A DNA stretch of 63,528 nucleotides, filler included, from Octopus bimaculoides (lineage: Eukaryota), in NCBI RefSeq assembly GCF_001194135.2. It is 5 parts of 4 records of this genome, joined end to end, with 100 filler letters (N's around TTAATTAATTAA, not from the genome) between each part and the next. Parts side by side here need not be neighbours in the genome. Positions count along the whole stretch, not along the records: positions 55,021 to 61,361 come from NC_069007.1; 4 more parts are not named here. One strand, written 5' to 3'. The notes beneath the pieces are model-generated. The model was given only the letters and a program-made list of their open reading frames with translations, was not told where the DNA came from and ran no database searches. Shown here one piece after another: positions 6,728 to 61,614 of this stretch (positions are counted from its first letter, which is position 1; each line of letters starts with the position of its first letter). Made by a program: the position numbers and the translations under genes.

Positions 6728-8056
6728 CAGTCAAAGCAAGTCAAAACTAAATTTTAAATTAAAGTAATGTTTTATGGTGTGTTAGTCATAATAGTTAAAC
6801 AGTTTTATGAATGGAGGAACAGAATTAGTGATCTAGTCAGGAGGGTTTTTAGAAGGCCAGAACCTACAAAAATTTGGAGAAATGTCTGCAAGATCCAAAA
6901 TACTGAATGGGTGTTCTGGTAATATTTAGAGGCTTTTGCAGACCGCAATAATGTAATCTTCTCGGCAAAACGTAATGAGCATCTTTTTGTTCAGCTGATA
7001 CATAACCTGCTTTTCTCTTGAATTTTTCATTTACTAGTGTATTCCTTGGGGTTCTCTTTAAGTCCCTAATCGCTTTGTCGAAATACAATTTAACCAAAAC
7101 GTTATTTTGCTTTTTAGAGGTAACTAGGGTAAATTTAGCTGACATGTAATCAAAGGCTTTCCAGCTGTGGGAAACCCATCTTGTCTATAGAAATAATGTA
7201 TTTATTTATTCAATCGAGATAAATTACAAGATTAGTAGAAGTCTTGTTGTGAGACATGAAAGCGATGACATCATCCGCTCCTATTTCTGAAAACATCAGT
7301 AAGATACGAGCTTTTAAGCAGTGACTTAACCTTCTAAAATCGAATGCAATGCTCACACTAACCCTTCAAAAAATTAATGATATGTTGACTAAATGGATAC
7401 AAGCAATAAGATGCGCTTTATGTTTATCCGAGAAACTCTAGATTATAACACAACCACAAGAAATAGATCAGAGATTTCGCCTATTTGCTGTCAAATTCGA
7501 AATCTTAGCCGGTTAATTTTCAAATTCAAACACAGTAACCATCCTTGCCATAAGACATTCTTTCTTCTATAGAAGTAATCACTTATTAAATCACAAGAGG
7601 AGTCCCTAGTACCACGGGGCCCATTAGTGGCGAACATTGTAAGCACGCAGTCATAACTACCCCCACACACTACTCTGAATGTGAGATGGGACGGCTACGG
7701 TTAGGACACATTTACTCATAGGTCTGTTAGTAATAACAACTTAAAGTTATGTTTATACACTTTTGATTGATTGATTTCTTCTTGAATGTCTTCAGTCTAA
7801 GAGAGTTAAGTCATAGACAATTGTTTTACTGATAAGAAATAGTCAAAATAGCCTGAAAACAATTCCATTTTAAACTAGTTCTGTATTCAAACCTAGACAC
7901 ATCCATCAAATTGTTTCCATTGCGTTGATCATTCTTCCAGCAATATTGATTTCTGATATAGGTACGATGCAACACATTTTGAAGGGAGAGAACTGTCTTT
8001 TATGTCTATGCTGGTACTTGTTTGAAAGGACTGTGAATGCGTACATGTTTGTCTGT

Positions 8057-9700: not shown

Positions 9701-10139
9701 TAGTAAACTAAAACGCCAACAGAGAAGAGAAAAGCAGATAGACATCGTACTTCACATATGTGTATTTTCTTTTCTCTCTTTTTTTCTTTAGAAATTTGTC
9801 TTATAAACTCCTTTTGCTCATAATATCAATACGCGTACATATTATCATTTTCCTAATTTTTAGACGTATATCCCCAGAATTTCAATTGAAAAATCTATTT
9901 ATATTTAAAAGTTACAAGTCACACCTTTGCAATGCATTTCTAGGGAGACTATCAACGAGATTGTTGCCGGGCACAAGTGAACAAGTCTATTTTAGATGCT
10001 CAAATTGGGTACTGTAGTCACCAGATGTAAGCGGGCAAAACTATTTTAGCTGATGTAACCTGTAATAATGTATTCTTATATATTGTTTATTCTATTCTAA
10101 TGATTGTCTATTTTATTTTAATATTCTGTCTTTTACTTG

Positions 10140-10585
<446 letters not shown>

Positions 10586-10789
10586 TACGCTTATTCCCAT
10601 CCAATATTTGGAAACTACACTAGTTTATCAGTAAGCACCATGCCCTGAATCATTTTCTCGCAGCCAGCTTCTAAATTTCATTTCTTGTCACTCACTGTAT
10701 TTTTTTTTTTTAATAATGAAAAAGGAAAACAAGGAATAAAAATAGAAGTGACTATCATATCCAATATGTCATAATCTACCTTTTTCTGA

Positions 10790-11345
10790 ATTCGCTAAAA
10801 TACAAGGCAAAAGAATGCCCGAAGATTGTGAAAATAAAATATTGGAGTTAGGGTTAAGGTCACAAATTTATCATAAAAACGAGAAAGCAGGAAGATTTTG
10901 AAATGACACAAATTAGAAACATGAATAAAATACCTATTACTGTTGATGTCCCTACATAAAAACCTAACGGCACCAAAACTATAAAAATCAAAACAACTAG
11001 ACAGTGCAGAAGCTATTATACCATCAGCCTAGCGTTTACAACTGCTTGTAAAAAGTTTCCTTATCCTCATGAAAAATAATTTTTTTCAAAGGAAAAAAAG
11101 TAATTATTGTTGTTAATGCTCATCATAAAGGTTGGATGGATGAAGAAAGACTGAAAATTTAGGTGGAGAAAATGTAGGGAAGACGTCCATGTATATAACT
11201 TACTAGCTATATATCAGAGCTCTTACCTCCATTTCAGTGCAAATACTTTTTAATTATGAAATCAAAGTTGCTGTGATTTGCTGTGATGAAGTCTTCAAAA
11301 AACCAAGATTTCGTACATCAATAGTTTAAAAAGTTCGTTGAGTGC
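10790..11345 (+). mobile_element. pogo-family DDE transposase remnant
   Basis: Translated pieces QIRNMNKIPITVDVP (cf. IGNMDETP.FD.P), GTKTIKIKTT and VNAHHKGWMDEERLKI*VEKM*GRRP (cf. KGWMDE...W.RRP); many stops. Confidence 0.75.
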
Positions 11346-11374
11346 AATAATTGGCAGGATGCAAAGAGCAGAAA

Positions 11375-11570
11375 GAAATATTGGTTTCAAATTTGGGCAC
11401 AAGGCCAGCAATTTACGATTCCAACTTTCATCTGGTACTTAGTTTATCGACCCCCGAAAGGATGAAAGGCAAAGTCGACCCCAGCGGGATTTGAACTTAT
11501 AACGTAATGACGGACGAAATGCTTAGCAGCATTTCGTCCGGTGTGTTGACGATTCTGCCAGCTCACTGCC
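11375..11570 (-). mobile_element. SINE family A
   Basis: ggatgaaaggcaaagtcgacc...gggatttgaact...gacgattctgccagctcac. Confidence 0.9.
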
Positions 11571-12449
11571 TCAGTGCCGAAAGAAATATTACAGCACATT
11601 TTATCCAACACTATATCGATCCACGTATCTACCAACTTGTACATCCACCCATCCTATCTCAAAACAAAAATAATCTAATATTCTATTATGTTCACATCTT
11701 TAATAAATTATTTATGTTTGTAATCTAAGATATCTTAAATGATTAATTCAACTAATCAATAGCAAGGAATATTAAATCAGTATTTACTAGCTTTCACAAA
11801 GACTTAATTCTGTAAGTGAAATATTAATGCTCATCCTTGAATTAAAACCGGCTCGTTGTAATCCGACCTATAGAATTTTAACTTCAATTTTTCAGCTTAC
11901 AAGTTTTCAATTTGTTGCTGTTATGCCAAGAGTAACCTCCCTTATATTTTTTAATGACAGCCAGCTAATTTTTACTGTACGAGTTAGGTATCACACATTC
12001 GAAGTTTTTTCGATAAATGTTGTTGTACCACATTTCAAAAATGTAATGAATATTTAATTGAAACATAAGACATCTTAAAACTATAGCTAACTAGTAATGT
12101 TTTTATAATGAATTAGTACACAAAATTTTCAGAGAAGAAAACATTCTTTAAAAAAAAAATATTAGAATTGTGTCCCTTTAAGACCTAGAATTATCGCCCT
12201 TCGTGGAACGTCTTTCTATGTTAAACTGTCGTATGTCCAAATTTGGCCAAATGCGTTTCATTCAATATTTATTTTTGTTTGCAATATCCTGTTCCTTTGA
12301 TCAAACTACCGTATCTCCAGCTGCTTCAGATGCCAAGATATCGAAATTTATCAAAGTGTAGTACAACGGTTTGGCTATGGAATGGTGAAACTATTTTTCT
12401 GTTTTCTGGAAAAGAAACAACATTTTGGACTTACGACACTTTTGCATAA

Positions 12450-12695
12450 TAGCCGGTACTTATTCTATCGATCACTTTGCCGGTTGTCAGGCGGTGTGGG
12501 GACAAACACAGACACAAAGGCACACACACACACACACACGGTAGGCGTCTTTCAGTTTCTGTCTACCAAATCCACTCACAAGGCTTTGGTCGACCCGAGA
12601 CTATAATAGAAGACGCTTGCCCAAGGTGTCACGCAGTGGGACTGAACCTAGAACCATGTGGTTGGGAAGCAAACTTCTTACCACACAGCCCGCTT
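12450..12695 (-). mobile_element. SINE family B
   Basis: ctaccaaatccactcacaaggctttggtc...cagtgggactgaacc...ttcttaccacacagc. The reverse strand has A-box-like TGTGTGG and B-box-like GGTTCAGTCC. Confidence 0.9.
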
Positions 12696-13249
12696 GCACA
12701 TATTTTTTATTAGAAATTTACAAAAGTTAAAGTAACGAACTCGCAGAATCGTTAGCGGTGTTTCTACTGGGTTTTTTTACGTTCTGAGTTCAAATACTTT
12801 CATCCATTCAAAGTCAATAAAATAAATACCAGTTGAACAGGAGGACATCCAGTTTTGTTTTGTTGAAGACGCCTACATTCACCTATGTACGTCTCTCAGA
12901 CTTTTTGAGAGGATATTGAAGAACTCTTGGCCCTTGAAACCCAAGCTGTTGCAGTATCTAGTCTTGCAATATTAAGAACCAAATAATGATTTCTAACACT
13001 AAAAATTATTAATTCTAACATACGCACAAGGTCAGTGATTTTTAGGGTTGGGGGTTAATCGATTATATCGATCTCGATACAAGACTGATACTGTCATTAT
13101 TCGAATACCAGAGAGAGGGGAAATGGAGTTTCCTTCAGTAGTATTTAAACTCAAATGTAAAAAACCGTGGAAAAAAATTACTGAGGGGCTTTATCCAACG
13201 TTCAAATGAGTCTACAAAACTCGTTCCATTCTGACACTAATAAACCTTT

Positions 13250-13420
13250 CTACTACGGAGACAAGTAATCAGATTTTGGAGGAGGGTACTAGTTGATTGC
13301 ATCGACACCAGTGTCCGAAAGTATAAAAAGTAAAGTCAACCTCGGAGGAATTCGAACTCAGAGCGAAATGCCGCTAAACATTTTGTTCGGCCAGTTAACG
13401 ATGCAGACAGCTTGCCACCT
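13250..13420 (-). mobile_element. SINE family A, degenerate
   Basis: aaagtcaacctcggaggaattcgaactcagagcgaaatgccgctaa...cagcttgccacct; head-to-head with the copy at 13472. Confidence 0.7.
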
Positions 13421-13471
13421 GCGTTCTGAGACTAGTAATAATGATTATTATTATTGTTATTATGGAGTTTT

Positions 13472-13680
13472 ATAAGGTGGCGAGCTAAGCAGAATCGTTA
13501 GCACCCCGGGCGAAATGCTTAGAATCTTTACATTCTAAGTTCAAATTCCGCCGAGGTCAACTTTGCCTTTTATCCTTTCGGGGTCGATAAATTAAACACC
13601 AGTTAGACACTGAGGTCGATGTAATCGACTCGTCTCCTTCCCACACGTTTTTGACCCTGTGCCTATAGCAGAAAGGATTA
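13472..13680 (+). mobile_element. SINE family A, full length with target-site duplication
   Basis: taaggtggcgagc...agttcaaattccgccgaggtcaactttgcc...tgtgcctatagcagaaagga. Flanked by ttattatggagtttta (13457-13472) and ttattatggtgtttta (13678-13693). Confidence 0.92.
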
Positions 13681-13831
13681 TTATGGTGTTTTAGTAGTTT
13701 GTGTTTGTTGCTTTCTTTCTTTTCATATTTTATTACTGAAATTCTCATTGATTGTGTGCAACAGACGTGCACGGTAATTGTCACGTGTTACTTCAATACT
13801 GTCCATGAGCTTAACTACGTCAGTACCTTTT

Positions 13832-13898
13832 GTATTATATGAGTCATACCCGATAAGTTTTCTGTGTGAAAACTTATCGGGTGTGACTCATATAATAC
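13832..13898 (+). ncRNA. 31-bp hairpin, pri-miRNA-like or MITE-derived
   Basis: gtattatatgagtcatacccgataagttttc-tgtgt-gaaaacttatcgggtgtgactcatataatac. Fully paired with one G:U. Function unproven. Confidence 0.3.
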
Positions 13899-14893
13899 TA
13901 AGAGACATCAGTAGCTGTTCGTGCTGACACTACTTTTAAATCAATATTGTGAAAGATCCCAATCATGATCGATATTTTGAGATCCTAGTTTATGTCTTTA
14001 CATTTATGTCTTTCTTTTTTCAATTTTTTTTTTTTTTTTTTTTTTNNNNNNNNNNNNNNNNNNNNNNNNNNNNNNNNNNNNNNNNNNNNNNNNNNNNNNN
14101 NNNNNNNNNNNNNNNNNNNNNNNNNNNNNNNNNNNNNNNNNNNNNNNNNNNNNNNNNNNNNNNNNNNNNNNNNNNNNNNNNNNNNNNNNNNNNNNNNNNN
14201 NNNNNNNNNNNNNNNNNNNNNNNNNNNNNNNNNNNNNNNNNNNNNNNNNNNNNNNNNNNNNNNNNNNNNNNNNNNNNNNNNNNNNNNNNNNNNNNNNNNN
14301 NNNNNNNNNNNNNNNNNNNNNNNNNNNNNNNNNNNNNNNNNNNNNNNNNNNNNNNNNNNNNNNNNNNNNNNNNNNNNNNNNNNNNNNNNNNNNNNNNNNN
14401 NNNNNNNNNNNNNNNNNNNNNNNNNNNNNNNNNNNNNNNNNNNNNNNNNNNNNNNNNNNNNNNNNNNNNNNNNNNNNNNNNNNNNNNNNNNNNNNNNNNN
14501 NNNNNNNNNNNNNNNNNNNNNNNNNNNNNNNNNNNNNNNNNNNNNNNNNNNNNNNNNNNNNNNNNNNNNNNNNNNNNNNNNNNNNNNNNNNNNNNNNNNN
14601 NNNNNNNNNNNNNNNNNNNNNNNNNNNNNNNNNNNNNNNNNNNNNNNNNNNNNNNNNNNNNNNNNNNNNNNNNNNNNNNNNNNNNNNNNNNNNNNNNNNN
14701 NNNNNNNNNNNNNNNNNNNNNNNNNNNNNNNNNNNNNNNNNNNNNNNNNNNNNNNNNNNNNNNNNNNNNNNNNNNNNNNNNNNNNNNNNNNNNNNNNNNN
14801 NNNNNNNNNNNNNNNNNNNNNNNNNNNNNNNNNNNNNNNNNNNNNNNNNNNNNNNNNNNNNNNNNNNNNNNNNNNNNNNNNNNNNNNNNNNNN

Positions 14894-16199
14894 CAGTGAT
14901 ACCTCGCAATACGAGTTTAATTCGTTCCATGACCGAGCTCGTTTTACGATTTACTCGCTTCACAAATCAATTTTCTTCATTGAAATTAATTCAAGTATAA
15001 TTAATCGGTTCCAGGCCCCCAAAACCACCCAAAAATCTTTTTTTATGTGTTTTAAAACAGAAAAGATGCAGATACAAGGAAAATGACAATTATAAAAACA
15101 TAATAAAAGAGAATGCAAAAGAAATGCGTAAACTGGTTTTATTGATTTAATTACTTTAAAGATGGGACGATTTGTGCGCGAGGACGACGATGAAGCGGGA
15201 GGAGGAGAAGGATTGCTTGGAAGGAGAATCTCCTTTCACTAAGTCTTCAGGATGAACAATTTCTGGCGTTTTCTCTCTCATTTCGTTTAATTTAGGTTTT
15301 TTGAACACACTTTCTTCACTTTTCACACTTGCAGGTCGTTTCATTAGAAATATATCAAGAGAAGTCTTCTTTTTCCTGCCTTTCAAAATGTTACGAAAAT
15401 GTGTCAGGGCAGTGTCATTAAATAAAGCAGCTGCATGACCCGTAGATATTTTTTCAGGATGATATCTTTCTACAAATTCAGAAACATACTGTCACTTTGC
15501 CAACACCGCCTTTATGTCAGTTGTAGAGATAGCCTTCTCCGCTACACTGTCCTCCTCCTGGGAACCAATCTCTTCCACCGCATCCGAATGCTGCTGCTCT
15601 TGAAGCTGCAGGAGTTCATCTGTCGTCAGCTTCTCTGAGTATTCCTCGACGAGATCTTTAATGTCCCCATCGTCAACATCGGGGCTCATGGACTTACCAA
15701 GAGACACTGCCTTCTCGACTACAGGTGTCTCAGACTCAAACTCATCGAAGTCTCTTTCGGATACGCAGTCAGGTCACAGTTATCTCCATGCAGAATTCAG
15801 GGTTCTCCTCGTTACACCCTGCAAGTCTATATCGATTTTTCAGGCAGTTAATGTTGTAGTGTTCCTTCTAAAACTCACGAAAGGTTAGATTTGTATTTTC
15901 GGTGACTTCAAAGCACCGACGAAACAAGTGTTTGGTGTACAATTTCTTAAAATTAGACATCATCAGTTGGTCCATAGGCTGCAAGACAGGGGTGGTGGTG
16001 CGTGAAAGGTACAGAACTTTTATGAATTTAAATTCGTCCAGGATATCATTTTCGAAGTTGGGGTGAACAGGAGCAATGTCGAGGAAGAGGTTGACCTTAA
16101 AAGGAAGACCGTTCTCCAGAAGGTACTTTTTCATTGCTGGTCTGAAGATAACTCGGTGAAGAATTACTTGGTGACTAAGACTTTAATGTCTGCCTCCAC
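14894..16199 (-). mobile_element. Tigger (pogo superfamily) DNA transposon, 3' two-thirds, pseudogenised
   Basis: Terminal CAGTGATACCTCG at 14894. Minus-strand ORFs LLENGLPFKVNLFLDIAPVHP...TTPVLQPMDQLMMSNFKKLYTKHLFRRC, VDDGDIKDLVEEYSEKLTTDELLQL and KGRKKKTSLDIFLMKRP are typical Tigger DDE and C-terminal segments. The other end is lost in the gap. Confidence 0.92.
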
Positions 16200-16243
16200 N
16201 NNNNNNNNNNNNNNNNNNNNNNNNNNNNNNNNNNNNNNNNNNN

Positions 16244-16255
16244 TTAATTAATTAA
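16244..16255. other. Assembly linker TTAATTAATTAA between N runs (also 33847-33858, 54965-54976, 61406-61417)
   Basis: Identical six-frame-stop palindrome embedded in about 100-nt N blocks four times. Confidence 0.95.
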
Positions 16256-16299
16256 NNNNNNNNNNNNNNNNNNNNNNNNNNNNNNNNNNNNNNNNNNNN

Positions 16300-17130
16300 C
16301 ACCATCACTACTACCACCACTACCACTACCACTGCCACCGCTTCTACCACCATCACTACTACCACCACTACCACTACCACTGCCACCGCTTCTACCACCA
16401 TCGCTACAACCACCGTTGCCACCACTGCCACCGCCTCTACTACCATCACTACTGATACTGCTATCACTAACATGGTAACTGCTGCCACTACTACCAGCAC
16501 TACTAAATCATCCACCACTATGTCACTACTGCCACCACCACCACCACCATCACTATCACCACCAGAATTTATCAACATAACTGGTACGACCACCAAAGCG
16601 TCAACTAAGTTATCGACATCAGTGGCACATCTCCCCCATCAGTGGCACATCAACATCCCCACCTGACAAGCAACATGAACGCTATTGTCAACGTCATACC
16701 ACCGCCGCAGCTATCTTTTCCACCACCACAAACACTACCACCATCACAATCATCATTAACACAACTTTCTCTTTCAACAACAGCAGCATCATCATTATCA
16801 CTACCATCGTAACGCATGCATCAAATGGGATGGTCACGGTCAAAATGGACAATAATCGCACTTCATTGCGAACAGAGCTGACCTGGAGGGCTAAACGAAA
16901 ACAGCAGCACGACCGCCAGTGTCACACTACGAGACCTTCTGATGCCCAATCAACACAAACACCATTATGACGACGCCGCCATCATTACTCCCACAACATT
17001 CAACAAAACAACGAAAAAAAAACACATCCCCAACACCATTACCACTACTACCATCACCACCACCACCACCAATATCACCACCACTACTACCATTTGCACT
17101 CCACGCTCACACACTCACGAAGCTACGTCA
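16300..17130. repeat. Degenerate (ACC/ACT/CAT)n trinucleotide low-complexity tract
   Basis: Directly visible; 48-bp higher-order units start at 16301, 16349 and 16397. Confidence 0.9.
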
Positions 17131-17290
17131 CTTTTACTCATTTATCCTCCCACCGTTCAATCGTTACTATAATCATCCCTGCCACTTATTGTACTCCCCA
17201 CACATTCATCTACGATCGACCTCCAAAAGCTATTTAACAATAGAAGACATCCCTGCCTCCTTCGCAAACCTATTACTTTCGTTCTCGTAC

Positions 17291-17321
<31 letters not shown>

Positions 17322-17479
17322 TTACACCCCACTCTTTCTCTTTCCTCTCTCTACATCCGCTCTCTCCTTTTACCCGTTCAATTGTTCATTTTCTTTGCCA
17401 ACTTTTATTTCTCTTACCCTTTTTATATTCTTGTCATTTAGTAACCACTCTTTGTTTACATTATCAATCGTCTCTCTCG

Positions 17480-17514
<35 letters not shown>

Positions 17515-17783
17515 GTTACTTCTGCCTTCTATCTCATGTTCTTTCTGTTTGCAGTTTCTTCTCTATTTTCCTCTTCAAATATGATCAACTTCCTCCCTTT
17601 CGGTTCCTCGTCTCCCTCAATATTTATCCAACTCTCTCAATCCAGCTCGACTCACACCTAATTTATCAATGTACTACGATACATTTTCCCTCTCACAGCA
17701 TTTTAAGCCAGCCACGTCCTACTTCATTGTGACATCATTTACATTCTCCTCTTCTCGTTCACTACTTCCATATTTCTTTACCA

Positions 17784-17820
<37 letters not shown>

Positions 17821-18049
17821 AGTAGTAGTAGTAGCGGCGGCTGTCGTCGTCTCAGCCTCGTTGTTGATGGTTTGTCAGAGTTTCTTAACACCAGCGCAAA
17901 TCTATCATCCTTGATAGAGTGAGCGAAGTGAAGGCTACAATTTATTTTATCAACAACGAAAAGACTAAAAGAACAAACCAAATTTTTTCCAGGATTTAAA
18001 CTCAGAAGAAAGAAATGTTGAAACGATGAAATACTGCCACTCATTTTCC

Positions 18050-18190
18050 TCGGCCTCTATAAAGGGCAATAACGGTTTCTGATTGAGGCATAAAGTCCGG
18101 CGGAATTTGAACTCAGAATGTAATGCCTAACAGAATGTCGTTAAGGATATTGTTCGGCGTGTTAACGGTTCTGCCAGCTCACCGCCTTAT
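18050..18190 (-). mobile_element. SINE family A, internally deleted
   Basis: ggcggaatttgaactcagaatg...gttaacggttctgccagctcaccgcctta. Confidence 0.8.
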
Positions 18191-18204
18191 TATTATCATC
18201 ATCA

Positions 18205-18263
<59 letters not shown>

Positions 18264-18290
18264 AATAATAATAAGAAGAAGAAGAAGAAG

Positions 18291-18830
18291 AAGAAGAGTG
18301 CGACTGTTATGGAATGAAAACAATATTTCGACATCTTGTGTGTCTTTCACATTTTGGACCTGTAGAAGATAACAGTCGCACTCGTCTTATTGTATCTTTG
18401 CTTACCGGGGGAGTAACATTAATCCTTTAAATAATAATAAAGCGAAGTTGCTTACTTATCGACCCATCATGCCCGTTTGATTCCAGGATTGTAAAGAAAA
18501 AGAGAGAGAAAAAATCAACCCCTTAAAATCTGAAATAGGGAGAATTTGGAACATGAGAACAGTAAAGGTTATGCCTATAATAATTGGTGCATTGGGAATA
18601 CTAAGTCAAGAAATTGACAAATGGCTGAAGGAGATTGGAACAGAATACTCGGTAGAGCTCCTACAGAAAGTGTGTCTCTTAGGGACGGCACGGATTATCA
18701 GAAGGGTCCTAGGCACTTGACTGTTGAAAACTTGCAGATACCTAAGGTTACAAATAGTAACACGCTATCTACATAATCCCTACCAGGAATAAGACTGAAC
18801 CTGAGACAAATCAAAATCATGGGCCGGGTT
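18291..18830 (+). mobile_element. Non-LTR retrotransposon 3' end with restriction-like endonuclease (R4/Dong- or HERO-like)
   Basis: CLLIDPSCPFDSRIV...LKSEIGRIWNMRTVKVMPIIIGALGILSQEIDKWLKEIG...LLQKVCLLGTARIIRRVLGT* (stop at 18718-18720). Sits beside (AAT)n(AAG)n. Confidence 0.85.
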
Positions 18831-54920: not shown

Positions 54921-55118
54921 NNNNNNNNNNNNNNNNNNNNNNNNNNNNNNNNNNNNNNNNNNNNTTAATTAATTAANNNNNNNNNNNNNNNNNNNNNNNN
55001 NNNNNNNNNNNNNNNNNNNNAAGAAGAAGAAGAAGAAGAAGAAGAACAACAACAACAACAACAACAAGAAAGAAAGAAAGACAAAAATGAAACCGACAAA
55101 ATGTTTGCGAGTATTTAC

Positions 55119-55255
55119 CAGTTCCGTTGACTTCTGCCTGAAGACGAATTGATTTCCCAAGTGGCAAATCTTGGTTAATTTTGGTTGAAGAATCTTCTAC
55201 AACCGTCAAGCTTCCTTTGGATTTATCGACCATTGCAATATTTCCAGGTGGTTTC
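55119..55255 (-). CDS. Coding exon of probable ZP-module protein (linker and start of ZP-C)
   Basis: Acceptor ttattgttttag|G and donor CTG|GTAAAT; 137 nt, phase 2 to 1. Encodes KPPGNIAMVDKSKGSLTVVEDSSTKINQDLPLGKSIRLQAEVNGT. Confidence 0.7.
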
Positions 55256-55589
55256 CTAAAACAATAATTATTACACGATGGTTTGACCAGAGGACGAAGC
55301 GCTGATTGGGGGAACATCGCTAGAGCTAATTAGAGAATTAACTGCAGAAACTAAACGTCTGTATATCGAGGGTTGCTGTGAGGTAAAGAGAACCATTGCC
55401 AAAAACGAAATATTACATGGACTAAGTGAATGCATCTGCCTTAAGTGGGTTAAATACTTGTATCGCCTGAAAATAGGCTAAATGTATCTACCTCAGCATC
55501 GAAAGTGACTGTATGCCCTGCACAAAGTGGGATAAGTTAATGTATAGACCAAAAGTTGGCAACAACAGCGACGACGACAACAATGATTA

Positions 55590-55804
55590 CGGTTTCAAGA
55601 TTTGGTACAAGATCGGTAATTTTAAAGGGAAGGGTATGTAGAATATATCGACCCCAGTATGTAACTGGTACTTATGTTATCGACCCTGAAAGGGTGAAGG
55701 GCAAGGTCGACGTCGGTGGAATTTAAACTCAGAATATAAATCCAGAAGAAATGTCGCTAAGCGTTTTGTGCGGCGGGTTAACAATCTGCAGGTTTGCCGC
55801 CTTA
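55590..55804 (-). mobile_element. SINE family A
   Basis: atcgaccccagtatgtaactggtactt...aaggtcgacgtcggtggaatttaaactcaga...gtttgccgcctta. Confidence 0.85.
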
Positions 55805-56660
55805 ACAACAGCAACAATAATAACAGTAAGAACGACGACCACAACAAGAACAACAACGTCATCCAGTGCTATCTTAAGGCATGGGGATCCTAGACAGGTA
55901 CCTCACGGGTTTCGGGTCCCAATTCGGATCTATATATACTGTGGTTTACAGTCAAATAATACATACTATAGGGCCCAGTGCATTTAGTTGCCAGTGGTGT
56001 GACTACAGTACTGTTAAGTTAGCGCTGATGACAATGATGACAACAACAACAACAACAACAACAACACCAACAGCAATAATATAATTGCTCTGCAGTTTAG
56101 AAACAAAAACACAGTTGAAGATTTTAGTTTACGCTGGAGTTACTTACCCTACAATATGTATAAGGTCTGGTCCTAAAATGGTGGCCGGCTTTGTAGTGTT
56201 GCGGAAGTCACATGACAAGCTGAAGATCTGATCGTTTGCCACGACAATATACGGAAGATGTTGTATTACTACTTTTACGCTATAATTACCGGTGGAGCTC
56301 GACTGCAGATGAAAGCAAAGCAAACGGAGAAAATAACAACAAAAATAATAAGCGTTTCTTATTTTGGCACAAGGCCAGCAACTGTGAGATGTGGGGAAAG
56401 TGCGTGACTCTAAGAGGGGAAATATGTTGAATAAAACCATAATTAACTGACCCTCCTGTATTTTCTTTTGCTCAAAGCCAGGTAGTTTTCAGCACCCTTT
56501 CATATATACACATATGCATGCATGTAAATGTAGGTGTGCATATATCAATATACACACATATGTAGAGATGCTGACTTTTTTCAGTCGTGTTTACTCTAGA
56601 CCAGGGATACCAGACATGCGAAGCACTCAGCCATATATTTAAGTACAAGTAATTACATAC

Positions 56661-56930
56661 GTAAAAAGAGAACATCCCACCTGAAAAAAGCAGGTCTCGT
56701 TTGATGACGTGTCATCTGTTAGGGTCCCACCTGGTTTTACCGAAATACACAGCCTATAAGGGTCGTCTGGGGACCCCTTACCATCGACCTTTCCCGCCTG
56801 TTTACTGCAACTGTCTCTCATCTCTTCCACATAGATATCATATAAGCTGGTGTGGCGTGACCACGTGGACAAAGGGTCGGTTCTGTCACGGTCTTCACTA
56901 CTGCCGCTGGTGTTATTTGAACCCGTATCG
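56661..56930 (-). CDS. Coding exon of probable ZP-module protein (ZP-N-like)
   Basis: Acceptor tgtgtttctgtatag|C and donor TAC|GTATGT; 270 nt, phase 2 to 2, open and relatively GC-rich. Ends YRLCISVKPGGTLTDDTSSNETCFFQVGCSLF. An alternative donor CAG|GTGGGA at 56681 would break phase. Confidence 0.7.
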
Positions 56931-57435
56931 CTATACAGAAACACAATCATCTTTCTGGATTGATCACAGACATAACGACCTGAAGATAAATGTCGAAAAT
57001 TTCATTAAAAAAATGTTTAAATTGACAAATACTTATTAAAATATTTAATCCATTCAATGACCGGAACATGTGAGAAAGCAGAAGAAAGAATATATGAAGG
57101 TATGTAAATATGTATGTAATTATGCACACACACACACACACACACACACNNNNNNNNNNACCATATATATATAAACATATATAGTACGTATATATACGTG
57201 CAAACATATGCACTCATACACACGTACGTATGAATGTATTTATATATATCTATACCTATCTCCTTATGTGTGTGTGTGAGTGTGTGTGTGTGTGTGCGTG
57301 CGTTTATATGTATGCATATATATATATATATATATGGTATATATTATGCTGATTAACCTTTTCGTATTCACTGGAGATACATAACAAACAAATTAGATTT
57401 TGGCATTAAATTTAAATTCGGCAACCATAATAATT

Positions 57436-57470
<35 letters not shown>

Positions 57471-57967
57471 GCTGTTGTTGCCGCTGCTGCTGTTGTTCTT
57501 GTTCTTAGATTATGAGCGGCGCTGACGAAAATTTATTTAAAAACCAATTAAGAAATTGAATATAAAGGAGTTGTTTGTTCTTTATTTATATATCGTTTGT
57601 GAGTTCTATAAATCGATGAGAGTTTAATTTAATTAGTTCGGAAGCAGAAAATCCAGATGTAAGATACATTGCAGTTAAATTAGTATTTGAGGAATGATAT
57701 GTCGGTAACTAAAGATAGCTATAATTCTCCGATGAGTACACCATTCAGCTGAGTGGTGTCCATATTAACTTATGCTGTAGAGTTTATCTCTCATTGTTAA
57801 CAAACATCAATAGCACCATGGATACATGTTAAAACATGCTAGGCAAGATCTTTTGTCTCTGGATTGATTTATTATATTTGTATTTGTGATCTTGTACTAA
57901 TATTTTGAGTCTAAGCCGATTAAATCCGTTTACAGTCTTTGGAGATTCCATAGACAACATGGATTAC

Positions 57968-58085
57968 CAGAGAAGATGCTGTATGAACTGTTCGGGTCTA
58001 TTTTTGGTTACATTTGTCGCAAGTCCGCCCCGAATGTACAAAGCAAAACCTATTTCTGATCTTTGAAGCGAATATACGAGAAGTG
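57968..58085 (-). CDS. Coding exon upstream of the ZP-N-like exon
   Basis: Acceptor aagaacctttcag|C and donor CTG|GTAATC; 118 nt. Only phase 1 is open. The phase-2 end creates a Cys codon (TG|C) with the next exon. Confidence 0.65.
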
Positions 58086-58487
58086 CTGAAAGGTTCTTGG
58101 CTTTGGATAAAAGAAAATATACGAGGATCGGTTAATTATTCAACATATTCCCCCTCTCACACTCACACACTTAATTGCAACGGTCTTTCGGTTCTTCTAA
58201 AGCCTGTAAAAGAACCCGGAAGGCTGAACCTCCAGCCAGGCCTTTCGCGACATCCTTAAAGCCAAGAACTTTTCATCGCCCGCTTGTACATTGTACATAT
58301 TTAAAAGTACGGTTTGGAGATCAAAATTACTGTGATATATCATACACTTATTTTAAAGAACAAGTTGGAGACTGTGGGAGGCCTTCTACTTATTTTAAAG
58401 TAGAATATGAAGATCAAAATAAGATTGGCATACCTTGAACTTATTTTAAGGTACTACTTAGAAATCGAGATGTCTATGGTATATTTT

Positions 58488-58688
58488 ACTTATTTCCCCC
58501 ACCACTGCTTGACAACCGGTATTGAAGTGTTTATGTTCCCGTAACTTAGCAGTTCGGCAAAAGAAGCAGATAGAATAAGTACCAGCCTAAAAAAAAAAAT
58601 AATTAATTAGTACTAGGGCTGACTCATTCGACTGAAAATTATTCCGGGCGGTGCTCCAGCATGGCTGCAGTCTAATGACTGAAACGGG
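58488..58688 (+). mobile_element. SINE family B, 3' half
   Basis: gcttgacaaccgg...ccgtaacttagcagttcggcaaaaga...ggcggtgctccagcatggctgcagtc. Confidence 0.85.
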
Positions 58689-59337
58689 AAAAAGATTGCA
58701 CCACAATAGAACTAACTATTGCTGTAGATTGGTGGAAGGTTTTTCCTAACAACAAAATAACACATTTCAGGATTGGATCGTTTTAAAAAATGAAATAAGA
58801 AAAGAAATTTTCTTTCTCGCTGTTTCTGATTAGTTTTATTTACAGCAAACTACACACTTTTCTTTGCTTTCCTGCCAGGCACACAGACACACATGCGGAC
58901 GGGCAGACAGGCAGATATGCTGGCAGTCAGACATGCAGGAAGTCAATGAGGAGAATACGATTGCTTTCTACGAGAAATCTCAACTTAATTTTTTTCTCTC
59001 TCCATGTCACGCAATGGCGCCCGGAAATATAAGAGATATTGACTTCCTGTTTTTATGATAACACATAAAAGACTGCATCTCGATAGTTTTCCTTCAATTC
59101 TTAATTTGTTTGCTTCTTTTACAGATATTTTATTTATATTTTCCATTTGCTTATTTATTTTCGTCTTTTATATATTTCTCTCAACAAAAATTTATTTTTC
59201 TCTCTTCTCTTGTTTATTTTTTGGCAAATATTATACAGAATTGAGGCTGTTATCCTCCTCTCCCTCCGTCTCATAATCAACATTCGATAACAACATTATC
59301 ATCATCATCACACCCTCCATATTATTATTACTATTAG

Positions 59338-59500
59338 TATTGTGGTTAGGGTGTTGTGCTCACGATCTGTAGATCGTGATTTCAATTCCTAACCCGGGTG
59401 GTGCGTTGTGTTCTTAGGCAAAGCATTTCATCTCACGTTGCTTTGTGATCACTTCGGTACCTCACATGTGGTACACCATGCACCTGTTCAGACAACGTCG
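59338..59500 (+). mobile_element. Degenerate tRNA-headed SINE of another family
   Basis: gtggttagggtgttgtgctcacga...atttcaattcc...gcgttgtgttcttaggcaaagca (A/B-box-like head). Confidence 0.55.
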
Positions 59501-59631
59501 ATGTGATGGAATTTTTTTATATTATTTATTCACCATTACGCATGTTCCATTTTCTAGTAGGAATCACAAGTTTTTACTTGTCTAACTTTGTAATTCCGAG
59601 TGGCATATGAAACACATGTTTCCTTCTTTAA

Positions 59632-59757
59632 AATCCACTCACAAGGCTTTGGTCGGCCCGAAGCTTTAGTAGAAGATACACGCCAAGGTGCCACTCAGTG
59701 GGACTGAACCCAGAACCATGTGGTTTGAAGCAAACTTCTTACCACACAACCACACCT
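59632..59757 (-). mobile_element. SINE family B, 5' part
   Basis: aatccactcacaaggctttggtcggcccga...gtgggactgaacccagaaccatgtgg...cttcttaccacacaaccac. Confidence 0.88.
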
Positions 59758-60075
59758 ATTACACATGTACGCTTATTACACCACACTCATATATACACAC
59801 ACATATATTTGTATGTATGTATGTATGTATGTATTTATGTATGTATTTATGTATGTATGTATGTATTTATGTATGTATCTATGTATGTATGTATTTATGT
59901 ATGTATCTATGTATGTATGTATTTATGTATGTATGCATGCATGTATGCATGTATGTATGTATGTATGTATGTATGTATGTATGTACACATTTATATGTAA
60001 TAGACATAACAATATATTCGCCCTGTTACACATAAGAAGATTAGTTTTCATTAAATATTAAGATTTCAGACTTAC

Positions 60076-60094
60076 CTGATGTTGAGAACGATGC
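60076..60094 (-). CDS. 19-nt microexon GCATCGTTCTCAACATCAG
   Basis: Acceptor ttttccatttttgtttttatcag|G and perfect donor CAG|GTAAGT. Read phase 0 to 1 (ASFSTS+G) it joins 58085 in frame. It could instead be UTR. Confidence 0.6.
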
Positions 60095-60473
60095 CTGATA
60101 AAAACAAAAATGGAAAAATATACATATAAATCTTTATATATATATATACACATACCTATATATACATGTCTATATATAAACATCAGCCATTATCAACCAT
60201 TGAAAAGAACCATGGAAAATGTACTTAACAGCGCTAGGGTTAGAACCCCGAACTACACTGTCACGGAACAGCCGGGTCATTATGACTCTGCTGGTTTAGA
60301 GTCACAGAAAGGGCCAATGGACGATGGACCAGCTGTCTCTGAGACAAATATAAAGAACACCTTTTTGTGCTGCAGAAGAACCACAAAAATTGGTATATAT
60401 TTATGTATGTATATATTTGTGTATATATACGCATATAATTATACATATATTTCCACATAATGAAACGTACATC

Positions 60474-60511
<38 letters not shown>

Positions 60512-60768
60512 NNNNNNNNNNNNNNNNNNNNNNNNNNNNNNNNNNNNNNNNNNNNNNNNNNNNNNNNNNNNNNNNNNNNNNNNNNNNNNNNNNNNNNNNN
60601 NNNNNNNNNNNNNNNNNNNNNNNNNNNNNNNNNNNNNNNNNNNNNNNNNNNNNNNNNNNNNNNNNNNNNNNNNNNNNNNNNNNNNNNNNNNNNNNNNNNN
60701 NNNNNNNNNNNNNNNNNNNNNNNNNNNNNNNNNNNNNNNNNNNNNNNNNNNNNNNNNNNNNNNNNNNN

Positions 60769-60826
<58 letters not shown>

Positions 60827-61614
60827 TCAGTGTGTAAAAAAGCACATAAGCACTATTCTAAGGATATTCACAGACAGACAGTCAGACAGACAGACAGAGA
60901 AGCAATTACATTTCAAACAAGCCACATACATCAGAGCGTTTAAACAAATAAACAGAGTAAGTGACAAATTCAACAGCAACTGAAAACACACGTCTTCTGC
61001 ATGAAGGAGCCAGAAATACATCATGGCGTCTTGAAATCACAAAGAACCGTAAACATGCATAGCAAGCGTTTAAACAAATTCGCACTGAGAGAGGAATGGG
61101 GAGGAAAAGGGAGAGAAGGTGGAGACAGAGAGGGAGGAATGAGAGCAACCCAACAAACCCATCAACCAATGATAACACACATCGCAGAAATCAAATAAGC
61201 TACGAACACCAAATAACCGTTTGCCGCCAATTTGTTTTGAGAATCAATACGAGATGATGACGTAGAGAAGCCTTTACACCAGCTTAACTAAATAGACTAA
61301 ACAGCAAAATGACGAAATATTTGGCTTTTAATATGTGTGTGTTTGTGTGTGTGGGGGGGGCNNNNNNNNNNNNNNNNNNNNNNNNNNNNNNNNNNNNNNN
61401 NNNNNTTAATTAATTAANNNNNNNNNNNNNNNNNNNNNNNNNNNNNNNNNNNNNNNNNNNNGTATGTATGTATGTATGTATGTATGTATGTATGTGTAAA
61501 TATTTATGCATATAAATATACAAATATATATTTGTATAGAATATGCGTGCAAACATGTATGTCTCCCCACCCCTATCTGACCAGCGATATGTCCGCCTCT
61601 CTGTCTATATATCT

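Follow-up and report, generated by a model that had tools for sequence, protein, structure and literature searches.

Transcript-backed exons for the ZP-N half of a probable VERL-like ZP-module gene in Octopus bimaculoides

The minus strand of the piece studied here, positions 55,119-60,094 of the window (the whole 63,528-nt stretch of Octopus bimaculoides DNA that was analysed), very probably carries the middle of a protein-coding ZP-module gene from a mollusc-wide, uncharacterised VERL-like ZP family. We put the probability of this reading at roughly 0.85. Three exons, named C', E and D below, are transcribed and spliced together. Their 197 codons are open, without a stop, and the resulting 197 residues comprise the interdomain linker, the first ZP-C strands and, ahead of both, the whole ZP-N domain, in which four cysteines (C5, C57, C97 and C131 of the peptide) are conserved. 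The rest of ZP-C lies downstream of the piece. Egg coats, among other extracellular filaments, are made of ZP-module proteins. To our knowledge, no cephalopod egg-coat ZP protein has been characterised, and a literature search found no paper on this ZP family in cephalopods. The gain is chiefly in annotation: for one octopod ZP gene, the exons of the ZP-N half are now corrected and backed by transcripts. The public O. vulgaris and Argonauta models leave out all or most of that half. The gene is a candidate to consider in work on octopus egg envelopes; it does not represent a new kind of system.

Three exons are joined in RNA contigs

The transcribed features are as follows.

Exon C', 56681..56979, minus strand: 299 nt; first three quarters of ZP-N, conserved cysteines 1-3.
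Intron C'-E, 56303..56680, minus strand: 378 nt; skipped by RNA contigs.
Exon E, 56148..56302, minus strand: 155 nt; last ZP-N strands, fourth conserved cysteine and interdomain linker.
Intron E-D, 55256..56147, minus strand: 892 nt; skipped by RNA contigs.
Exon D, 55119..55255, minus strand: 137 nt; remaining linker and first ZP-C strands.

The gene was found in four RNA runs of one study, each holding a contig of ~1.5 kb from a related octopod (~92% identical). This contig aligned to the piece as 56983-56681, 56302-56147 and 55254-55118, joining C', E and D exactly and at canonical sites. The E-D joint was also present in an RNA contig of a second species, and a perfect-match contig of O. 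bimaculoides stopped precisely where exon E ends on its 3' side. In two deep RNA runs of O. bimaculoides, no reads fell on these exons, which suggests that expression is restricted or low.

Exon C' lies between an acceptor at 56979/56980 (cttcag/GT) and a donor at 56681 (CAG/GTGGGA), and it encodes (G)RYVCDQSRKMIVFLY...PYRLCISV...NETCFFQ. Exon E encodes SSSTGNYSVKVVIQHLPYIVVANDQIFSLSCDFRNTTKPATILGPDLIHIVG, in which YSVKVVIQHLPYIVVANDQIFSLSCDF represents the last ZP-N strands, and exon D encodes KPPGNIAMVDKSKGSLTVVEDSSTKINQDLPLGKSIRLQAEVNGT. The E-D intron contains (GTT)n runs and abundant dispersed repeats, with very high repeat depth at 55650-55760 and 55975-56080. On the minus strand, stop-free blocks of at least 250 nt bounded by AG and GT occurred 3 times, against 0.86 in shuffled sequences, and these three blocks hold C', E and D. 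Searches of the piece for tRNAs and Rfam families gave no match.

Revision of an earlier four-segment chain

An earlier note on this DNA had proposed a four-exon chain made of segments A (60094-60076), B (58085-57968), C (56930-56661) and D (55255-55119), all on the minus strand. The four segments are indeed present, bear AG/GT flanks and join without a stop into the peptide that was given; the RNA contigs use C'-E-D instead. Exon D was drawn correctly and is covered by these contigs. As for exon C, its core was right, with an overlap with C' at 56681-56930, yet its start was placed 49 nt late (at 56930 rather than at the 56979/56980 acceptor) and its end 20 nt late (at 56661 rather than at the 56681 donor), and the stretch read there as coding (VGCSLF) is the first 20 nt of the C'-E intron (56680-56661). 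As a gene model, the chain has to be given up: RNA contradicts two of its three junctions, and both the fourth conserved cysteine and the closing strand pair of ZP-N sit in exon E, which it missed. The cysteine said to exist only across a splice junction is not real either, since that junction is not in use.

The two upstream segments are:

Segment B, 57968..58085, minus strand: outside the transcript seen.
Segment A, 60076..60094, minus strand: 19 nt; open frame that would join C' in frame (ASFSTS/GRYVC).

The most likely reading of segment B is that it is intronic and that its frame is open by chance. RNA depth was zero at 57973-58074 in the four runs holding the gene, where the depth of the gene contig was 15-32. 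An open block of this size is not evidence for an exon, because blocks of at least 118 nt are expected by chance (16 on the minus strand vs 12.6 in shuffles). Its donor phase is incompatible with the real acceptor of C', and its acceptor adjoins a dispersed repeat at 58083-58172. Compared with O. vulgaris, it showed 3 synonymous and 6 non-synonymous changes plus a 6-nt indel (pN/pS 0.62). Segment A, at 19 nt, is below the length that read or contig alignment can place. It ends in TCAG, and the contig extends past the C' acceptor by the same 4 nt (56983-56980), a weak support given that many exons end in CAG, and the segment was not found in Argonauta when sought with up to 3 mismatches.

The exons are conserved in other octopods

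Exons C', E and D together differ from O. vulgaris by 21 synonymous and 11 non-synonymous substitutions (pN/pS 0.15), and this comparison of sequences indicates purifying selection on all three. Exon C' is 96% identical to its O. vulgaris counterpart, with mostly synonymous changes, and exon D shows 9 synonymous changes and a single non-synonymous one. In Argonauta hians, the acceptor and donor of exon C' are the same, and exon E is also conserved.

Public models exist for both orthologues. The O. vulgaris one (P0001, 'ZP domain-containing protein', 159 aa) is 98% identical to exon D over its residues 10-54. It is truncated: its start is an ATG within the intron that precedes exon D, ZP-N is missing altogether, and the coding sequence of C' and E found here is absent from it. 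The Argonauta hians model (GAB1605586.1, 119 aa, partial), 74% identical over exons E-D, begins in exon E and is truncated as well. The shortness of these models is accounted for by missed exons.

Assignment to a VERL-like ZP family

The earlier note had also assigned the product to the ZP family, and this call held with the corrected peptide. A Pfam search with the former 181-aa chain returned no ZP family, just a sub-threshold DUF7866 match; it was the inclusion of exon E that turned a chain without a Pfam match into one matching VERL_C (PF25272). For the C'+E+D peptide, this match took in residues 91-196 and, of the 231 profile positions, 38-148; its score of 26.2 bits (E = 8.6e-6) falls 1 bit short of the curated threshold of 27.2 bits because the edge of the piece truncates the match. 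When the O. vulgaris C'+E+D sequence was extended with the downstream P0001 exons, VERL_C rose to 57.7 bits (cut-off 27.2), the ZP-C family PF00100 was matched at 36.2 bits (cut-off 24.6) over residues 179-280, and CUT_C reached 29.9 bits (cut-off 30). The window peptide alone cannot attain the PF00100 score, since the piece holds just the first ~45 ZP-C/linker residues. The part encoded in the window gave no match to a stand-alone ZP-N model.

A word-indexed protein search yielded few relatives, and it was an exhaustive representative search with HMMER that revealed the family. It returned 23 relatives, none with a descriptive name beyond 'ZP domain-containing', and every one whose source was looked up came from a mollusc. 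VERL_C, the ZP module of the abalone vitelline-envelope receptor and the family of VERL/VEZP, likewise molluscan, ranked first among Pfam families for the window peptide as well as for 12 of 15 relatives, and ZP-C was found in 8 of the 15. Against solved structures, the family profile matched chicken ZP3 (E = 6.4e-7), 28yj, a subunit of a vertebrate egg-coat ZPD filament (E = 1.6e-5), and a second ZP3 (E = 0.026). When the composite protein was compared with PDB sequences by phmmer, the only matches were chance ones to antibodies. Collectively, these profile matches establish homology to ZP modules at the level of sequence.

Cysteines and predicted fold of ZP-N

In an alignment of 17 ZP-N units of the family, C5, C57, C97 and C131 fall in nearly invariant cysteine columns. 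The canonical ZP-N disulfide pairing is C1-C4 and C2-C3. The family-profile alignment places the C4 strand of exon E on the ZP3 strand IECHY, and exon E on the ZP3 strands ...VIIRTNPAVIPIECHY. The ZP-C opening strand that the earlier note had recognised (LPLGKSIRLQAEV, exon D) aligns in the same way to the matching ZP3 strand (QLGDILNIQAEV).

An AlphaFold model of the 141-residue ZP-N was all-beta, with a pLDDT of 79.2 and a pTM of 0.72. Among the Foldseek matches listed, those with the highest TM over the whole model were ZP-N domains, all with E-values >0.2: ZP2-N1 (9h4r) at TM 0.52-0.53, the VERL repeats (5mr3/5iia/5iib) at 0.42-0.49, and uromodulin (6tqk), with a probability of 0.66. E-values were non-significant for both the 197-aa and the ZP-N models (best 0.2-0.5), and the top rows by E-value were unrelated short local matches. 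The structure search is only suggestive of a ZP-N fold.

Comparison with VERL and ZP3, and a possible role

Full-length relatives resemble the VERL plan on a small scale: their ZP module is preceded by an additional ZP-N-like unit and followed by a basic cleavage site and a membrane anchor. The cleavage site (RRRR/RRKR) followed by a transmembrane segment was seen in relatives P0003, P0004, P0006, P0014, P0017 and P0021. VERL repeats were also among the full-length structural matches of highest TM to the octopus ZP-N model. Unlike VERL, the family lacks a long array of ZP-N repeats and has its own ZP-N motif, C-S-K-x-x-G-x-x-x-G-x-G-S-x-x-x-P-Y, to which octopods, as seen in the window peptide, add a loop of ~24 residues within ZP-N. 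The alignment of the profile to vertebrate ZP3 (3nk3, 8bqu) starts in the last strands of ZP-N and extends through ZP-C, including the C4 strand of exon E and the first ZP-C strand of exon D. In contrast, identity is very low, the cysteine spacing of ZP-C and the tail differ, and the N-terminal half of ZP-N is unaligned by sequence.

A paralogue of the same family, with ~28-33% identity, is represented by XP_014778313.1 in O. bimaculoides and CAI9741722.1 (404 aa) in O. vulgaris. It has two ZP-N-like units and an RRRR site, and the O. vulgaris copy sits on the opposite strand of the same chromosome, at a distance of ~95 kb. A fusion of its units N1 and N2 came up as an idea for the origin of the ZP-N studied here; BLAST scores to the two units are too close to separate them.

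By analogy with ZP3, uromodulin and VERL, the product would enter the secretory pathway and polymerise head-to-tail via ZP-N and ZP-C, giving extracellular filaments or a matrix; any role in the egg coat is equally putative. A more specific proposal, which we regard as speculative and rather improbable, is that in cephalopods this gene and the paralogue near it might correspond to abalone VERL/VEZP, namely as structural and sperm-facing components of the octopus egg envelope. The atypical ZP-N, with its CSKxxGxxxGxGSxxxPY motif and its octopod-specific, acidic and Ser/Thr-rich loop, might then serve as a species-specific recognition surface, and the orthologue might also be without the usual cleavage-site and anchor tail.

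Alternative readings of the locus

Three other readings were weighed. The locus might be a decaying, non-functional ZP copy that is still transcribed. The truncated public models (159 aa in O. vulgaris, 119 aa in Argonauta), the C-terminal processing region not found for the O. vulgaris orthologue and the low or absent expression in several runs would all fit such a pseudogene. Nevertheless, 197 codons are open with a pN/pS of 0.15, exons and splice sites are kept from Octopus to Argonauta, and 4 of 4 ZP-N cysteines are retained, which makes it unlikely that the copy is decaying. Even less probable is a genuine second isoform of this gene that follows the A-B-C(long)-D chain and skips exon E. 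All four of its segments do carry canonical AG/GT sites and join in frame, the frame of segment B is open in O. vulgaris too, and VGCSLF, the peptide past the true donor, is similar to VGSSLF of the Argonauta read-through. Yet no RNA contig or read carried the A-B, B-C or C(56661)-D joints, bearing in mind that Logan contigs lose rare variants, and segment B, of a size expected by chance, had zero depth. Moreover, the chain matches no protein family, without E the product would lose its fourth conserved cysteine together with the final two strands of ZP-N, and a 1-nt insertion that O. vulgaris carries just past the C' donor, within the 20-nt extension, would break the earlier frame.

The comparison with EGF-ZP matrix proteins made in the earlier note did not survive: an EGF domain was found by Pfam in 0 of 15 family members, whose matches were limited to VERL_C, ZP-C and CUT_C, and the upstream unit of full-length relatives is a second ZP-N-like unit. 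Octopods, moreover, have no mineralised shell. An EGF-ZP shell-matrix-type product is accordingly the least probable of the three, even though EGF-ZP proteins exist in cephalopods (PMC9290575, which has an 'MZP1' clade). The reading of the piece as the middle of a VERL-like ZP-module gene is preferred.

Ends of the gene and the assembly gap

At least 229 nt of the transcript lie 5' of exon C', either further upstream or in a gap. Read and contig alignment in 57565-58560, 58561-59795, 60030-60470 and 60835-61361 recovered only dispersed repeats when this 5' transcript was sought, and the piece yielded neither a start codon nor a signal-peptide exon with support. At 59107-59190 there was a weak signal, which does not scale with the depth of the gene's contig. 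On the other side, no furin site, hydrophobic patch or membrane anchor was found downstream at the orthologous locus of O. vulgaris, nor was a C-terminal exon homologous to the paralogues' tails found in that species. The annotated last exon of P0001 looks doubtful.

The gap itself is placed as follows.

Assembly gap, 57150..57159, no strand: 10 N; in a (GT)n/(TA)n microsatellite of the intron that precedes C'.

It lies ~170 nt upstream of the C' acceptor, and no reading frame crosses it in either gene model. DNA contigs of O. bimaculoides stop at 57142/57144, and no DNA read or contig spans it. Between flanks that match those of the gap, O. vulgaris has ~1.5 kb of extra sequence.

Transcripts define the chain C'-E-D

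Read on the minus strand, the piece studied (55021-61361, from NC_069007.1) is AT-rich, carries microsatellites throughout and is interrupted by two runs of N (57150-57159 and 60521-60767). The earlier note had joined four segments into a divergent ZP gene:

60094-60076, minus strand, segment A, AG/GT flanks
58085-57968, minus strand, segment B, AG/GT flanks
56930-56661, minus strand, segment C, AG/GT flanks
55255-55119, minus strand, segment D, AG/GT flanks

These segments and their frames are present as described, and A-B-C-D joined yields exactly the quoted peptide, but the junctions are not those of the transcript. A fifth open segment on the same strand, exon E (56302-56148), is bounded by a strong acceptor and by GTAAGT as donor. 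Its translation starts SSSTGNYSVKVVIQHLPYIVVANDQIFSLSCDFRNTT and, judged by sequence, resembles the strands that close a ZP-N domain. Exon E is in frame only with an end of exon C 20 nt earlier, at CAG/GTGGGA (56681). Among open AG..GT blocks in the piece, those of 118 nt or longer were as common as in shuffles (16 vs 12.6); those of 250 nt or longer numbered three, against 0.86 expected, and these hold C', E and D.

RNA data from three species bore on the chain. In organism C, a related octopod (~92% identical), four RNA runs gave one contig each (1504-1579 nt); the contig aligned to 56983-56681, 56302-56147 and 55254-55118, and these blocks were contiguous within it. A 326-nt RNA contig from a second species, organism A, connected 56147-56284 with 55118-55254. 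In O. bimaculoides itself, a 164-nt contig matched 56147-56279 perfectly and ended at the exon edge, and two deep runs of this species held no reads on the C', E or D exons. The true chain is C'-E-D, with canonical sites throughout:

56979-56681, minus strand, exon C', RNA contigs and canonical splice sites
56302-56148, minus strand, exon E, RNA contigs and canonical splice sites
55255-55119, minus strand, exon D, RNA contigs and canonical splice sites

The original model had placed exon D and the greater part of exon C correctly, but two of its three junctions were contradicted by RNA and it had missed exon E. The cysteine said to exist only across a splice junction was an artefact, as transcripts do not use that junction.

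Exon B and the 5' end

Exon B is most likely not an exon: RNA depth was zero at 57973-58074 in runs where the gene contig had a depth of 15-32, and its donor phase is incompatible with the true C' acceptor. Since exon B is not transcribed, the A-B junction is wrong. Nearby RNA signal began only at 58083, within a dispersed repeat. Compared with O. vulgaris, exon B showed 3 synonymous and 6 non-synonymous differences and a 6-nt indel, a ratio of 0.62 from counts too small to distinguish from neutral evolution. The dispersed repeat is present in two copies of opposite orientation, at 56398-56495 and 58083-58172, ~75% identical to each other and matched at ~87% by many unrelated RNA contigs; the "acceptor" of exon B comes from the latter copy. 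Other short interspersed repeats (59618-59757, 58645-58686 and 55650-55760) reached RNA contig depths of 10^4-10^5. They are SINE-like, and neither ARAGORN (tRNA) nor Rfam gave a match at these three.

Exon A (19 nt) is too short for read alignment; its last four bases are TCAG, and a junction to C' would keep the frame (ASFSTS/GRYVC). The 4-nt overhang at 56983-56980 (TCAG) in the organism C contig arises because the alignment cannot tell these bases from the last ones of the upstream exon. That contig holds at least 229 nt of transcript 5' of C', which read alignment to 57565-59795, 60030-60470 and 60835-61361 did not place in the piece, and no supported signal-peptide exon was found there. 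The 247-N gap at 60521-60767, bordered by (TA)n and (CA)n repeats and lying upstream of the ZP exons, could conceal part of the missing 5' exon or exons. The 10-N gap at 57150-57159 falls within a (GT)n/(TA)n tract, with the true C' acceptor 170 nt downstream; in the original model it lies in the B-C intron, and no reading frame crosses it. Same-species DNA contigs showed no difference from 56700 to 57142/57144, then ended in the microsatellite, and none spanned this gap. O. vulgaris carries ~1.5 kb extra between the matching flanks.

The exons are conserved in octopods

A word-index protein search returned a sole match, the 159-aa O. vulgaris "ZP domain-containing protein" P0001. Its N-terminus reads MTCNNYCFR/KPPGN..., with the ATG inside the intron preceding exon D. 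The O. vulgaris locus was 90-93% identical to this piece, and exons C', E and D were 96%, 93% and 93% identical, respectively. Across the three exons, synonymous differences numbered 21 and non-synonymous ones, mostly in the linker, 11 (pN/pS 0.15). Argonauta hians shares the C' acceptor (ttcag/GT) and has the donor of this exon at the same codon; exon E is conserved there, and the annotated model begins only in exon E.

A few codons beyond the C' donor are still open (window 56680-56642; 7884-7930 in the Argonauta locus, L003), reading VGCSLF in O. bimaculoides and VGSSLF in Argonauta. In O. vulgaris, one extra nucleotide immediately behind the true donor breaks the "VGCSLF" extension. This stretch is probably conserved intronic splice-region sequence and not coding.

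The public gene models of the orthologues, at 10001-18654 of the O. vulgaris locus (L001, OX597840.1) and 10001-23633 of L003, are truncated, and exon C' is conserved yet unannotated in both species. The last exon of P0001, 6.7 kb away, looks doubtful. A 308-aa "gene" called on the minus strand inside the O. vulgaris E-D intron (L001 9028-9954) is almost pure poly-Glu/Gly and is most likely a spurious low-complexity translation of a microsatellite.

The product belongs to the ZP family

The original 181-aa chain had no relevant Pfam match; adding exon E to it brought up VERL_C, the abalone VERL ZP module (E = 1.1e-5). The corrected 197-aa peptide scored 26.2 bits against a VERL_C cut-off of 27.2, its match being cut off by the piece edge. 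We then scored a composite of O. vulgaris C'+E+D plus the downstream exons of P0001.

Pfam scores of the orthologue composite
VERL_C: 57.7 bits, cut-off 27.2
ZP-C (PF00100): 36.2 bits, cut-off 24.6
CUT_C: 29.9 bits, cut-off 30

A profile of the window peptide and P0001, run in an exhaustive HMMER search, gave 23 relatives. The ten whose source was checked include Argonauta, an O. bimaculoides/O. vulgaris paralogue, Lymnaea, Physella, the chiton Liolophura and the mussel Sinanodonta, with no characterised protein among them. Full-length relatives carry a signal peptide, a pair of ZP-N-like units and ZP-C, together with an RRRR-type site and a membrane anchor. The family profile matched solved chicken ZP3 over the final ZP-N strands and on through ZP-C (E = 6.4e-7), the vertebrate egg-coat ZPD filament subunit 28yj (E = 1.6e-5) and another ZP3 (0.026). 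With VERL_C and ZP-C above cut-off in the composite and the profile matching ZP3, the ZP family call proved correct. The comparison with EGF-ZP proteins did not hold: among 15 family members, VERL_C was found in 12, ZP-C in 8 and EGF in none. Via VERL_C, abalone VERL/VEZP is the closest named family. The ZP gene is real but ordinary, and the practical value lies in the corrected exon model. A published survey that includes O. bimaculoides describes the mollusc ZP clades VEZP, EGFZP and "MZP1" (PMC9290575); our search of the cephalopod literature found no paper on this ZP family.

ZP-N features and possible assembly

Alignment of 17 ZP-N units showed nearly invariant C5, G67, G69, C97 and C131, a mostly conserved C57 and the motif CSKxxGxxxGxGSxxxPY. 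An octopod-specific Ser/Thr/Asp-rich insertion of ~24 residues (peptide 17-44; 56931-56848) lies between the second ZP-N strand and the conserved YD-x-Y motif; it is absent in gastropod, bivalve and chiton relatives and was modelled at low confidence. An additional fifth Cys (PYRLC) is common to the window peptide and Argonauta.

The 197-aa structure model was mediocre (pLDDT 66.8), and its fold search was not significant. Modelling ZP-N by itself (141 aa) gave pLDDT 79.2, pTM 0.72 and eight beta strands. For this model no Foldseek match in the PDB had an E-value <0.2, and the model-spanning matches of highest TM were ZP-N domains.

Foldseek matches of the ZP-N-only model
Mouse ZP2-N1: TM 0.52-0.53
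VERL repeats 2 and 3: TM 0.42-0.49
Uromodulin filament: probability 0.66

These matches of a predicted structure are suggestive of a ZP-N fold; the family assignment comes from the profile results, not from the fold search.

What is seen of the gene extends from ZP-N over the linker into the beginning of ZP-C. By analogy with established ZP-module proteins, the precursor would be secreted, and ZP-N and ZP-C of adjacent subunits might assemble head-to-tail into extracellular filaments, a step that in such proteins usually follows cleavage at a basic site freeing a C-terminal inhibitory strand. Neither a cleavage site nor a membrane anchor was found in the O. vulgaris locus.

A 404-aa paralogue lies ~95 kb from the O. 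vulgaris orthologue on the opposite strand (L002, OX597840.1 9.885-9.915 Mb, reverse strand), and in Argonauta the accession numbers of the orthologue and of a paralogue follow one another directly; the family thus appears locally duplicated.
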